47,259 nt of DNA from Octopus bimaculoides (lineage: Eukaryota). The stretch spans positions 8,133,057 to 8,180,315 of the forward strand of contig NC_069009.1 of assembly GCF_001194135.2 (NCBI RefSeq). Reading direction: 5' to 3'. Below, piece after piece: positions 15,801-24,800 of this stretch (within the stretch, counting starts at the first letter, position 1; each line of letters begins with the position of its first letter). A program made the position numbers and the translations under genes. The notes beneath the pieces were generated by a model. The model did no database searches. It was not told the DNA's origin and saw only the letters and a program-made list of their open reading frames with translations.

Positions 15801-18800
15801 TTCATACCTGACTCTCTATTTTCAAAAAAAAAACATTTTTAATAATATATATATATATATCATCATCATCATGTAGTTGGCACACACTACTAGTTTTTCT
15901 TACTCCCACTTTCACTCACTATCTCCTCCTCCTCTCAGTCTCTTCTATTCATCTGTCTCTGTCTGGTATCTTCTTTTCCATATACGTTCTACCTCTTTCT
16001 GCATCTGCACCATCTTTGCCACCTTCGCCACCACCACCACCACCTACACTTCTTTGCTCCAACTCCTCCTACACCTTAGTTGTCTGAGAGTCTAAAGACT
16101 GCATTCCTACCACCCACCCCTACCACATTCTCACCCAGTCAGATAACAAACCAGCCAACCAACCAGCCAGCCTTTTTTTGTGTGTGTCTCACTACTTAAC
16201 CATCTTCGACTAAACTAAACTTAACTTTCCTGCCCCCCCCCCACTTCGTGCTCCACCTCCTTCACCCTCATCTTGTACTTCCTCCTACCACCTATGGCAG
16301 CTATTATAAACCTTTTTACCAGACAACCTGAACCAGGCTGATGTAGATAAATTTCACTTCACTTCAGTCAACGCTCAATCTTCAAGCTACACCGTTCGGT
16401 GTTTTCGTCCAACCTTTCTTATACCTAGCAACGGATTGGAATATTACTTGGCAGCTGAACACTATTACTATATAATTATTATTAGTAATATTATTAGCAT
16501 TATTATTACTTGTGGTTGTATTCCTTGAAGACCTGAACAACGAAACAATCAACAGCAAGTGAACTTGGAGTGAAACCAGACTATACTTAGATTCACACAT
16601 ACACCCATATATACTACACATATATATATATATTATACACACATTTATAATACATATATACAAACACACACACACACATATATATATACACACTCATATA
16701 TATATGAAGCTACATTGTAACAACACTGCTGCGCACATTTTGGAAAATATTCTTTACTTAAACCGGAACTACAAACAATAAACAGCTTCCGCTTTGTTTA
16801 TACAGAGGACATAATTGTTTCGCCTAGCATAAACACATATACAAATATATATATGATTGTCGTGTATATATAGATATACATTATTTACAATTAGTACCTC
16901 TATAGATTAGAGGTGTTTCATCATTGTTTGTCATTCACCACAACAACTACTTCCACCACAACTCCCACCACTCCTCCACACAACAGAGATTACCATCCCA
17001 TAGCTTGGTTATTTTTATAGAGTCTTGTATATATTATATATTGTTGAACTGATAGCTTCTGTAACTGGCTTACATGGAGTCCACCGAGCAAAACCACGTC
17101 CCTGAACAGGAAGCTGCAAGTGAACAACAAGTTCCTCCAGCAGCAGCAGCAGCAGCAGTAGCACCACCACCAGCCGCAGCACCACCACCACCAGCAGCAG
17201 CAGTTATCCAGGAACCAGTCCAGGCAATCCCACAGAGGCCACCCTCTCCTCCTCCTCCACAAGTGCAACAACCACAACCACAAAAACCAGCCGAGTCGCA
17301 TCCTCAGTCACAACAACTGGCTGCCGGAGCTGGAAAGCTGCCTCCCTCAGAACCTGATCACTTTAAACAGCAAGCTCAACAACATCACTATAGCCAACTT
17401 GAGCCACCGTACTATCCTTCTTTGGCTCATAAAAAGACTTCTCGAGAAGGGTCTCGGTCTAGAGAGTATTCAAGGCCATCTTCTCATACATCACGACTCA
17501 CTCCAAACCGTTCTATGGACTTCAGTGATATCCTCGGGAGCATGAGTCGAGAATTTCGTGGAACTAGTCCAGCTGTATTAGAAAACATCTCTTGCCATCC
17601 GTTGCTCTACAAAACTTACGATATGCCAATAAATCCTAAACTTAGTGCCAGGTCGAAGAAGGTGATTCGTGATGCTTCCGAGCTAGGTCAGTTTTCGCCA
17701 GGACTAAAAACCTTACTTGAAGTATGTCTTCTTTTCTTCCTCTTTTCTTTCCGAATACTGAATATTTAGTCATTCAATATCCTGCCAATATCTACGAACG
17801 TTTGTTCTTACTATCTGCCAAAACACAAAGTGCTTAACTGTAGTTTGCCCATCGTCTGCACATCCTTTAGCACAATACTATGTCTCATAATTCCATAGAA
17901 TACTAACACTAATGCTGCCCATCCATATTACCTCTGTTTTCATCCATTTCATATTACCATCATCCATAGTGTAATGAGGTTTCTGTATAAGAAAAACAAA
18001 TGAGAAAAATGTAAATCAAACATAAAAATGATATTGGTATAAGAAAACAAACATGCATATATATATATGTATATATATNNNNNNNNNNTAATTTTTCCAC
18101 TTAAATAATTTGATGTTTACTTATAAACATTTAATTCTTAAATTTAATTCTTAAAGCAGAAAAATTACCAGAAAAGCCATTTCTATTCACTTTTTTCAAA
18201 TATATAATATTGTACCAAGGATGTTCTATTTCTTATTCTACAATATATATATATACACACACACACACACACACACACACAGATATTTGTAACTGAGGGT
18301 ATAACATACAAATAGGTGTACATATTAAATAAAAGAGCACTCCATGTTATATGGAAATCTACATTCATAGTTAACAACTCAAATCTAATTTAAATCATAA
18401 TCTGTTCTAGAAAGAGAGAGAGAAACAAACATGTGAGAATATAGAATATAAGCAAATAGACATGTACATACATACGAAAGCAAAAAGCAAAAAGATTATA
18501 TAACAATAAGAAGCATGCTGGAATTATCCCAGCTTACTCAACAGTTTAAAATATACATACAAAAAACTAGCTACAATGACAAATGCACCAATATTTTAAA
18601 CGCCTGTAAAGAACTTTCTAAAGTTAATGCAACATTGAAGGTCAAGTTTATAGACATAGTTTCGTATTTTCCAAAACGTAGTTTCGTATTAATTAATAAA
18701 TTTACTTTAATAATTCTTCAATATTTGCCTCTAAAAGTTTCCCCTTTCTTTTCTTATCTTATGCCAATTTTTTGCTTTTACTTTCCATTTTCTTCTTTCA

Positions 18801-21800: not shown

Positions 21801-24800
21801 TTCCTAAATTGTCCTAATATTTAGGATTCAAAATCATCACCATCATCATCATCATCATCATCATCATCATCATCACCATCATCATCATCATCATCATCAT
21901 CATCATCATCATTATTATTATTATTCACCTGAGTCATGATTCAATTCTGGCAGGAATTTGTATATAAATTCTTCACCTTTAGTTGAAGAGTTAAACCTTA
22001 TAAGGTTAAACTATATATGCAATCTCCTCTTCTTTTATCTATATCAACAATCAAATATATATATATATGTATATATATATATACATACATACACACACAC
22101 ACATGTATATATATATATATATATATATATATACACACATATATATATACATGTATATACACACATACCTATATATACATATATATATATATATATCATA
22201 CAATTATATACATATATATTATTTTTTTTAATATTATATAATTATATATATATAATTACACACACACACATAGAAATACTTGCACATATGCATGCATGTG
22301 CATACACATTGATTATAATCTGAGGTTTCTCTTCATTAACAAATACATCATTGAGTACTTTTCCTCTTGCTTGACCACTCATATCCTAACCTCTTCGTGC
22401 CTCATATTAATTTGTTATTATCATGGAATTGAAGCATTCTGCATTTGTCAATAATCATCGAATATGTGTGTGCTAACAATGTCACTGTATTGGATGATGT
22501 TGGGAAATTTATCAAAAATCATTAATAAAATCATTAGCTGGTGTGTAATGACAAAATCAGACAATCCCATTCTGGTATATTATGTTGTTGACAGTGACAG
22601 ACATGACAAAATATATGTACCAACTGTGAAATGAACCTGGAATGTTCAGTTAATTTAAAATTGAATGTTTATATGAAAATGTGTGTGTGTGTGTGTACTT
22701 TACAGTCTATATGCCTAAGATTATGTAGCATCACACTTATTTTTTATAAACACCTACAAAACACAAACATATATTATACATTCACTAAATGTCTTTACTA
22801 TATTACATATACATTAATACAACTTATATATTCAACACTTGTTACTATTATAACCTTTTCCTTTATTTTATTTTGCCTCACTCTAGGCTAGAATTGAAGA
22901 ACTTGAAGAAGAATTGGAAGCTGAACGTCAAGCTAGAGCCAAGGTAAGTCTGCGACACTTCTATCAGTTTTTTTACCATTTACAGAACCATTCTTTAGAA
23001 TATCATTGATTTTTACTTATTCCCCTTTTAATTTACTATACCTTTCATCCAAATTCCTTCCTTGTATTGTGTGTATATAATACACATATATCATGCATTT
23101 TGGCTTGGTGGTTAAAACTTAATTTCCCAAGAATGGATCCTTGGGCAAATGTGATGCACCATAGCCTTAGATAAACCAAACCCTTTGCAATGAAATTTGG
23201 TCAATTGAAGTTTCTCTAGAAAACATGAGAGTGACTAAGAACGTGGATGACCTAATGGGTAATATAAGGAATATCCAGCTGAGAGGTCAACTGTTCTTAT
23301 TACACTCAATTCCCCAAATGGCCCAGCACAACTAGATATCAATATCTACTAAATTTCATTACTTCTGTAAGAAAGAAACTTCTGACAACTAGAGAAGTAA
23401 TCAATGGTTAACTGCATTTATAATGTTGCAGCAAAGCTTTGTGAATTTTTCACAAAATCACCACCAGACATTAGATTTAATTAAATTTGTATTCGTCCCT
23501 ATCTATATATTTCAGTGTTTCTATATTTGAAAGCCTGAAAGAATTGTTATAGTATTGTCCCAGCATAACCACAGCCAACTGACAGAAACTTATATATTTA
23601 TAAATATATATATATATTGTATATGTTTGTTAATCAAACCTCCTTTTTGATAAAAATTTTTTACCAAACTTCTTCTCCTTAATGCTTCTGTCCATTTTTA
23701 GTGGGGTGTCTTTGGTGTATAGGTTTTCCTTATCTGTCTGGAAATCTTCCTCCTACTCCATTCCTCCGACACCATCAATATATATCTACCTTTACCCACA
23801 TCTCTCTCCTCCTCCTTCTCCTCCTTCTCTGTCTGTCTGTCTCTCTCTCTCTCTGTACTTTTCCCCCTTCTCTTACATCTTAGATGCAATACTTTCTATC
23901 ACTCCTCCTCCCTTACCTTCCTCTCTCTTAGTTCTATCTTTCTTCTTCTACCACAACCAACATACTCAATCTATTACTCCCACTAAAACCCCACTGCCAC
24001 CACCACCACCTCATCACTTACACTTCTACCTCCCCTTCACTGGCAGCTCTACATCACCTGCTCACTTACGTCAGGTCGGATCTGCTGCCAAATATTTTTT
24101 TCAACTGAAGACGAAGATGATGAAGTGGAATGAAGAAGATTCGTTCTTCTTGTCATTGTTGTTGTTGTTGTTCTACTTGTTGCTGTTGTTGTTCTCTGAG
24201 TAATAAAAACTTGAAATTCCTTTCTTGGTAATGAACTCCAAACAACAGCAACAATGGAACCAGGAATTTTGGCATTATCTTATGCAGTTGCATCTTAGTG
24301 ACTTAGTAAATGCTGCTAAAAATAAACACCCATTAACATTCATACACAGTCCCTCTTATATATATATATGTATATATATATCCATTTATATATATATATC
24401 CATTTATATTTATCATCAGATATTTATTTATATATCATATATGTATATATATATATATATATATATATATATATATATATATCTGTATATATATATTTTT
24501 ATATCATCCAGCGTGTGCAGTGTTATATCTTCATTATGGCCAATCTTACCAATCAGTTTCGTGCTAGGGATTCAACGGAGTGCTAGGTAACAATCCAATT
24601 ATGTAACCCTGCGCTCATTAGAGATAGCTGATATGGAATGAAATATGGCCATAATATATATCTGGATACATATATGCATACACACAAAGTATGATAGCAG
24701 ACTCCCAATAAGAGTTAAGAGGATATTCCGTAATGTTAACTAATTGTTTCCAGAAGTGCTGAAGACTAATGGCCTTTTTTCTTTTGACTCTTTGAACAGG

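Follow-up and report, generated by a model that had tools for sequence, protein, structure and literature searches.

A probable catchin/myorod-type first exon in a muscle myosin heavy chain intron of Octopus bimaculoides

Introduction

Catchin/myorod is a headless product of the bivalve muscle myosin heavy chain (Mhc) gene, reportedly described by Yamada et al. 2000 and Shelud'ko et al. 1999 in Mytilus galloprovincialis and Argopecten irradians. Its first exon lies inside a large Mhc intron and encodes a unique N-terminal domain, 156 residues long in Mytilus, which is fused to 830 residues of shared myosin rod. A further headless Mhc product from an internal start, the myosin rod protein of Drosophila, incorporates into thick filaments; it was reportedly described by Standiford et al. 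1997, and a role in thick-filament assembly, length or packing is said to have been proposed for it. The fly protein starts about 260 residues further N-terminal than catchin, at the exon following the light-chain-binding region, and its N-terminus is neither conserved among close relatives nor homologous to the catchin module (PMC3912159). Reviews up to 2025 call myorod/catchin specific to bivalve catch muscle, and models of catch are based on that (PMC12040844, PMC4410989). Here we analyze a stretch of 47,259 nucleotides (nt) of the Octopus bimaculoides genome (contig NC_069009.1, positions 8,133,057 to 8,180,315, forward strand; hereafter the window). An intron of its muscle Mhc gene holds an exon that is very probably the first coding exon of a catchin/myorod orthologue.

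Catchin-type 'b' transcripts were predicted for Aplysia Mhc1, Biomphalaria Mhc1, Lottia Mhc6 and Crassostrea Mhc2 by Kollmar & Hatje 2014, whose study included no cephalopod (PMC3912159). The original prediction for the octopus locus, made from the sequence of the window, held that catchin is considered specific to catch muscle. This premise had been weakened in 2014 by the presence of the exon in Aplysia, Biomphalaria and Lottia (PMC3912159). The octopus exon resembles the gastropod and oyster forms in being an N-terminal exon that is unique and long, at the same intron position. While those are genomic predictions, some of them with expressed sequence tags, RNA contigs of several studies support the octopus junction. 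In Lottia gigantea a tail-only gene, Mhc8, shares its starting position in the rod with catchin (PMC3912159); unlike octopus catchin, it is a separate duplicated gene lacking a unique N-terminal exon. The searchable open literature yielded no paper tying catchin/myorod to octopus, squid or cephalopods.

As in Mytilus and Argopecten, the octopus exon lies inside a large Mhc intron and is fused to the rod at the identical residue (PGLKxLLE). The unique domain comprises 216 residues in octopus versus 156 in Mytilus, and the shared rod 824-837 residues versus 830. The host itself differs, being neither a bivalve nor an animal with a catch adductor. The octopus start is also distinct from that of the Drosophila type: it lies on a separate intronic exon, three rod-coding exons (8476-, ~9250-9362 and 10122-10212) downstream of the exon in which the light-chain-binding region ends (7659-8150).

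Results

An intronic exon joined to the myosin rod

The window contains the 3' two-thirds of the muscle Mhc gene on the + strand and covers the end of the motor and IQ region (7216-8150), the rod and the C-terminus. The catchin exon lies between the exon ending in KIKELQ and the exon at 22887, surrounded by the following elements:

10122..10212, + strand: final exon (S2) on the head side of the big intron; its end reads ...KIKELQ, then gtatgt (sequence and RNA contigs of eight runs)
16291..17073, + strand: 5' untranslated leader within the first catchin exon (RNA contig starts), with a putative start zone at 16291-16372
17074..17721, + strand: unique coding exon of 216 codons (open reading frame, homologues, published catchin alignment, substitution rates)
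17722..22886, + strand: intron removed from the catchin transcript (GTATGT...CTCTAG), holding a 10-N gap at 18079-18088
22887..22943, + strand: first shared rod exon, with acceptor ...ctcactctag followed by GCTAGAATTGAAG; used by head-bearing and headless transcripts

As originally predicted, an ATG at 17074 inside the intron 10213-22886 opens a run of 216 codons, directly followed by a GTATGT donor at 17722. An in-frame TAA (17062-17064) lies four codons upstream of the ATG, and position -3 of the start codon is a T. The GC content of the coding sequence is 49.8%, compared to 28-34% in the surrounding intron, and its stop-free run exceeds the longest one obtained in 200 intron shuffles (154 codons). 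The open reading frame (ORF) is therefore not a product of chance. The coordinates predicted for the big intron also stood, while its length of 12.7 kb has to be taken as an assembly estimate only, since three further N gaps lie within it (11299-12186, 13143-13412 and 15206-15702, all in the upstream half). Its description as the largest Mhc intron can be judged only for the part of the gene inside the window. The 10-N gap at 18079-18088 is located 357 nt past the catchin donor, inside the downstream intron, where it touches neither the ORF nor the junction, and the frame is thus unaffected.

Splice junctions were read from the unmatched ends of RNA contigs that had been aligned to short stretches of the window. 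The proposed in-frame splice 17721>22887, which leads from LLE into the rod, was found in contigs of five runs from four studies (X1, X4, X9, X10 and X11). In X1, a contig of 1088 nt (depth 60.8) covers the exon to 17722 and continues with CTAGAATTGAAGAACTTGAAGAAGAATTG, corresponding to the window from 22888 onward. The same continuation was observed in X9, X10, X11 and X4, which belong to three further studies (depths 110, 103, 52 and 56, respectively). Between 16664 and 17722 the contigs match with 0 mismatches and 0 gaps; from 17730 on, no RNA depth remains in any of the five runs showing the junction. Contigs over the head-side exon 10122-10212 continue with CTAGAATTGAAG, likewise 22888 onward, in all eight runs examined. 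Runs with the catchin junction also show the canonical 10212>22887 junction; the donor of exon 10122-10212 and the catchin exon are in competition for the acceptor at 22887. Head-side and catchin contigs alike end 29 nt into the shared exon, which is the behavior of a de Bruijn assembler when two forms converge in one sample. No contigs could be placed from runs X2 and X3, and X5 gave low-complexity matches only, although these runs were indexed as positive.

Within the unique exon, a GCA/CCA repeat at 17130-17200 encodes poly-Ala and poly-Pro. It breaks RNA contigs and draws unrelated low-complexity contigs. The repeat carries substitutions relative to a related octopod, and a two-codon indel is found further downstream, near codon 70. 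It is likely a length-variable tract.

Transcript start and 5' leader

RNA contigs of the leader begin at 16291 (X6), 16327 (X1), 16357 (X8) and 16372 (X7), none of them with an unmatched overhang, and upstream of these positions only low-complexity matches near 16015-16072 were obtained. Together with the in-frame stop at 17062, contig ends that lack an upstream join argue for an internal promoter and not for a cassette exon. On the assembled contigs, these data thus point to an own transcription start of the catchin exon. The first exon measures ~1.35-1.43 kb, of which ~700-780 nt are leader containing four short upstream ORFs. A TATA-like stretch, TATTATAAA, at 16303-16311 may serve as a promoter element, judging from its sequence.

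A (TA)n/(CA)n microsatellite (16595-16710) is located inside the leader. It attracts thousands of unrelated RNA contigs, with depths up to ~98,000, and leaves the leader divided between two contigs in every run.

Homology and conservation of the unique domain

The catchin exons of Mytilus, Argopecten, Crassostrea, Aplysia, Biomphalaria and Lottia end with ...LSARSKK(V/I)(I/L)R(D/E)(T/A)SDL....PGLKxLLE, at the same junction with the rod (PMC3912159 Fig S3). The last ~80 residues of the octopus exon match these published exons of mussel, scallop, oyster and gastropods, and the fusion point after LLE as well as the following rod residues are identical to the published alignment; the exon as a whole differs from all six. 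The module shared with Mytilus and Argopecten catchin reads (D/E)(F/Y)RGTSPxVLExI..HPLL..LSARSKKxxR(D/E)xxDL....PGLKxLLE. The shared module and the identical fusion point establish homology with catchin.

Further support is provided by database searches. A word-based search retrieved four homologues, one of them 90% identical and three 63-78% identical over the C-terminal half. A HMMER search of 1.84 billion representatives with a profile built from these homologues yielded 26 proteins (E 1e-112 to 3e-4), 23 of which had E <= 1e-10. All but one are short read-through ORFs of ~140-300 amino acids (aa), and the similarity stops at PGL(K/R)xLLE, followed by the V that corresponds to the GT of the donor. 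Several matches resemble published exons, namely those of oyster (P0016), Biomphalaria (P0015), scallop (P0026) and mussel (P0024). The last of these has exactly 156 residues and a Thr at position 141, the figures reported for Mytilus myorod (PMC12040844, PMC4410989). The comparison of the exon with catchin/myorod that had been suggested along with the original prediction thus revealed homology and a common fusion point. Pfam held no family for the unique domain; the sole match, to SAGA-Tad1, was at chance level (E = 0.35). A protein search with a rod exon returned short fragments only and no named full-length cephalopod myosin.

The three weakest profile matches (P0036, P0037 and P0038; E 1e-6 to 3e-4) retain LSARSKKxxR....PGL(K/R)xLLE followed by V, and their N-terminal regions are long and very different. 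Judging from the module, they may extend the catchin exon beyond the published molluscan classes, or even phyla.

The same gene layout was found in a second genomic contig from a relative (L004, ENA ERZ21867824). Its KIKELQ exon spans 4650-4739, its catchin exon, followed by a GTATGT donor, spans 10181-10780, and its rod exon spans 14938-14994. In comparison with a related octopod contig (L008), the ratio of nonsynonymous to synonymous substitution rates (dN/dS) is 0.27 overall. Codons 121-216 carry 11 synonymous and 0 nonsynonymous changes, and dN/dS is 0.55 for codons 1-120. This pattern indicates that the catchin coding sequence is under purifying selection.

The two parts of the domain also differ in composition. 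Residues 1-120 are acidic (isoelectric point, pI, 5.6), Pro/Ala/Gln-rich and of low complexity, while residues 121-216 form the basic (pI 9.9), Ser/Arg-rich conserved module. AlphaFold2, run on a 22-sequence alignment, predicted short helices in the module (mean predicted local distance difference test, pLDDT, 82.8) and a final helix that continues from PGLK into the rod, with helix 70-124 of the model unbroken.

A candidate phosphorylation site

Thr141 of Mytilus myorod is phosphorylated by smooth-muscle myosin light-chain kinase (PMC4410989). This residue, located 15 positions before the junction, corresponds to Ala201 in octopus, which is followed by Ser202 (KKVIRDAS). A Thr in the KKxxRDT context is thus lacking. 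Argopecten catchin likewise has Ala-Ser (REAS, compared with RDAS in octopus), and many homologues carry Ala or Ser at this place. The Thr is therefore a feature of Mytilus and does not define the family. The K-K-x-x-R context of the unique module presumably resembles the site of the regulatory light chain, and Ser202 might be phosphorylated.

Abundance of the headless transcript

The headless share was estimated in each run as the depth of the catchin exon contig (of the leader in X6, X7 and X8) divided by that of the head-side exon 10122-10212:

X9: catchin 110, head-side 269, ratio 0.41
X10: catchin 103, head-side 272, ratio 0.38
X11: catchin 52, head-side ~375, ratio 0.14
X6: leader 11.9, head-side 137.5, ratio 0.087
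X1: catchin 60.8, head-side 941, ratio 0.065
X7: leader 12, head-side 359, ratio 0.033
X4: catchin 56, head-side 3388, ratio 0.017
X8: leader <=2.8, head-side 1240, ratio <=0.002

The ratio of isoform depths spreads ~200-fold over the eight runs. Promoter choice therefore looks regulated between samples.

Shared rod exons and predicted product

The model of the shared exons was built from splice sites and reading frames and was checked against RNA contigs. Downstream of 22887..22943 it comprises the following elements:

24800..24886, + strand: shared rod exon 2 (AEKQRTEL...ATAAQ; splice sites, frame)
25277..25443, + strand: shared rod exon 3 (splice sites, frame)
27108..27186, + strand: shared rod exon 4 (splice sites, frame)
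31449..31694, + strand: shared rod exon 5 (splice sites, frame)
32200..32396, + strand: shared rod exon 6 (splice sites, frame)
33257..33389, + strand: shared rod exon 7 (splice sites, frame)
34349..34565, + strand: shared rod exon 8 (splice sites, frame)
35362..35602, + strand: shared rod exon 9 (splice sites, frame; an RNA loose end before 36459 matches 35571-35600)
36461..36653, + strand: shared rod exon 10 (splice sites, frame, RNA)
36844..37256, no strand: assembly gap most likely hiding a 129-nt (43-codon) rod exon at the position of exon 11 (RNA continuation)
37671..38042, + strand: shared rod exon 12 (splice sites, frame)
38655..38855, + strand: shared rod exon 13 (splice sites, frame, RNA)
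39297..39449, + strand: shared rod exon 14 (splice sites, frame, RNA), after which the 3' ends branch
40591..40638, + strand: optional 48-nt 3' exon adding 13 codons and a stop (a loose end after 39449 in X9 matches 40591-40620)
45107..45136, + strand: start of the terminal exon (matched by a loose end after 39449 in X4; direct joining makes TAA the first codon)

After 36653, RNA continues with AATTACAATCTCAAGTGGAAGAAGAACAGC, which encodes ELQSQVEEEQ. This sequence is not present in the window, and no exon is visible in the flanks of the gap 36844-37256. A contig of X1 spans 702 nt from the end of exon 10 to the start of exon 14; subtraction of exons 12 and 13 (702 - 372 - 201) leaves 129 nt, or 43 codons. 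Because the RNA continuation is absent from the window and the arithmetic leaves 129 nt, the missing rod exon is almost certainly hidden in this gap of 413 Ns. Gene models that rely solely on this assembly would miss 43 residues or disrupt the frame of the heptad register.

Adding the 129-nt exon brings the shared exons to 2472 nt in total. The shared contig has exactly this length in X1 as well as in X7, and the exon model is thereby validated. The 3' ends branch after 39449, with two continuations each in X1 and X7 and one each in X9 and X4. The shared rod thus contains 824 residues, or 837 with the optional 13-codon exon, 43 of the codons being deduced from RNA that falls into the gap. The headless product would have 216 + 824 = 1040 aa, or 1053 aa, with a computed mass of ~119-120 kDa. 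These values agree well with the ~836 shared residues and ~1050 aa estimated beforehand.

In L004, rod exons 2 and 3 are contiguous as a single exon (17506-17754). In the window they are separated by an intron of 390 nt containing an N gap (25002-25194), a gain or loss of an intron between lineages.

Discussion

A probable headless product of the octopus Mhc gene

The RNA junction, the own 5' end, the conserved module and the fusion point support the original prediction of a catchin/myorod-type headless isoform. We are highly confident that the exon at 17074-17721 is the first coding exon of a catchin/myorod orthologue produced from the muscle Mhc gene. On the RNA contigs, transcription starts inside the big rod-region intron at ~16.29-16.37 kb, and the donor at 17722 is spliced to the acceptor at 22887 common with head-bearing transcripts, all rod exons being shared from there. 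Translation of the mRNA would yield 1040 or 1053 aa. The protein is expected to dimerize through the myosin coiled coil and to assemble together with full-length myosin on the paramyosin-containing thick filament, where part of the surface positions would then be motor-free. In its N-terminal domain, an acidic, Pro/Ala/Gln-rich part of ~120 residues may act as a flexible spacer. This would be followed by a basic helical module of ~95 residues, which may hold a light-chain-kinase-type site with Ser202 and whose last helix would run straight into the rod.

Several observations weigh against this assignment. Support for a headless product exists at the level of RNA and sequence and not at the level of protein. 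The 5' end was deduced from the stops of assembled contigs and not from cap analysis of gene expression (CAGE) or rapid amplification of cDNA ends (RACE), and low-complexity sequence at 16595-16710 breaks these contigs. Contig depth is a poor measure of abundance, and the runs carry no tissue labels. In most runs the headless transcript is minor (2-9% of head-side depth), whereas myorod of bivalve catch muscle is reportedly equimolar with myosin. The N-terminal 120 residues are poorly conserved and Pro/Ala/Gln-rich, in contrast to the Ser/Thr-rich N-terminus of bivalve catchin, and the phospho-acceptor Thr141 of Mytilus is replaced by Ala. Finally, a contig from a relative, probably a decapodiform (L007, logan ERR4030425, contig 1-1533), runs through the canonical donor and joins the exon to the rod via a donor 491 nt downstream (CTTA then GTATAA), a form whose ORF would end after 236 aa. 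The first 30 nt of L007 differ from the genomic contigs L005 and L006, and it may represent an alternative or aberrant splice form. The canonical junction was seen in RNA of the window's own species only.

Four other explanations were weighed. The exon has a constitutive Mhc exon on either side and shares the downstream acceptor, as a cassette exon of full-length, head-bearing myosin would. We rejected this reading: a TAA stands in frame four codons before the ATG, no acceptor junction occurs in the contiguous leader of ~780 nt, the first positions of the RNA contigs fall at 16291-16372 with nothing attached upstream, and contigs from exon 10122-10212 lead only to 22887. A small independent nested gene, encoding an unspliced protein of 231 aa that reads through the donor to a stop at 17769, was discarded with the same firmness. 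Public gene callers do list such read-through products (P0001-P0004), and L007 keeps 491 nt beyond the donor; against this, RNA depth drops to zero right after 17722 in 5 of 5 runs, the contigs continue into the 22887 exon, and the read-through tails are unconserved between species. Somewhat less remote, yet still improbable, is a real transcript that is not translated, whether it serves as a regulatory RNA, is bound for decay or merely accompanies promoter activity in the intron. Its long leader (~700-780 nt) with 3-4 short upstream ORFs, the T at -3 of the start codon, its low level in most runs and support confined to RNA and sequence would fit such an RNA. Selection on codons 121-216 (11 synonymous and 0 nonsynonymous changes) argues against it, as do the conservation of the module in 26 homologues, which ends exactly at the donor, and the purification of the orthologous protein in bulk from bivalve muscle (PMC12040844).

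The remaining alternative accepts a true catchin orthologue and concerns its function. Instead of catch-like holding, the protein may dilute or space motors in cephalopod muscle of the obliquely striated or smooth type and help to set how thick filaments assemble, how long they are or how they pack. Animals that lack catch adductors carry the exon, namely gastropods (PMC3912159) and the octopus of the window, the headless share varies widely between samples, and the Thr141 site of Mytilus is not conserved. The conserved basic module with its candidate kinase-type site would, however, suggest a regulated interaction over a passive spacer. We regard such a non-catch role as quite possible, if short of an even chance. 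A bolder proposal, which we put forward tentatively and consider rather unlikely as a whole, is that catchin/myorod is an ancestral pan-molluscan thick-filament component, missed so far by models of cephalopod muscle, that makes up a third or more of Mhc output in some octopus tissues and acts as a phosphorylation-controlled, motor-free cross-linker or spacer.

Implications for molluscan muscle

The octopus locus does not reveal a new mechanism, and the present data describe an expressed catchin orthologue in a lineage where it was apparently undescribed. For annotation, the isoform has to be modelled from an internal start, and the assembly lacks one rod exon. That an animal with no catch adductor expresses an orthologue under selective constraint argues for a more general role in molluscan thick filaments, and the conserved gastropod exon points toward the same role. 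Work on cephalopod myosin isoforms has so far centred on head-bearing transcripts, and research on cephalopod muscle gains a testable candidate for the regulation of tone or filament architecture. The function suggested along with the original prediction, an uncharacterised thick-filament system for tonic stiffness, is speculation, and a role in motor dilution or filament architecture is an alternative of equal standing. If the motor-free cross-linker role were true, it might be the means by which arms, suckers, skin or vessels keep their tone economically.

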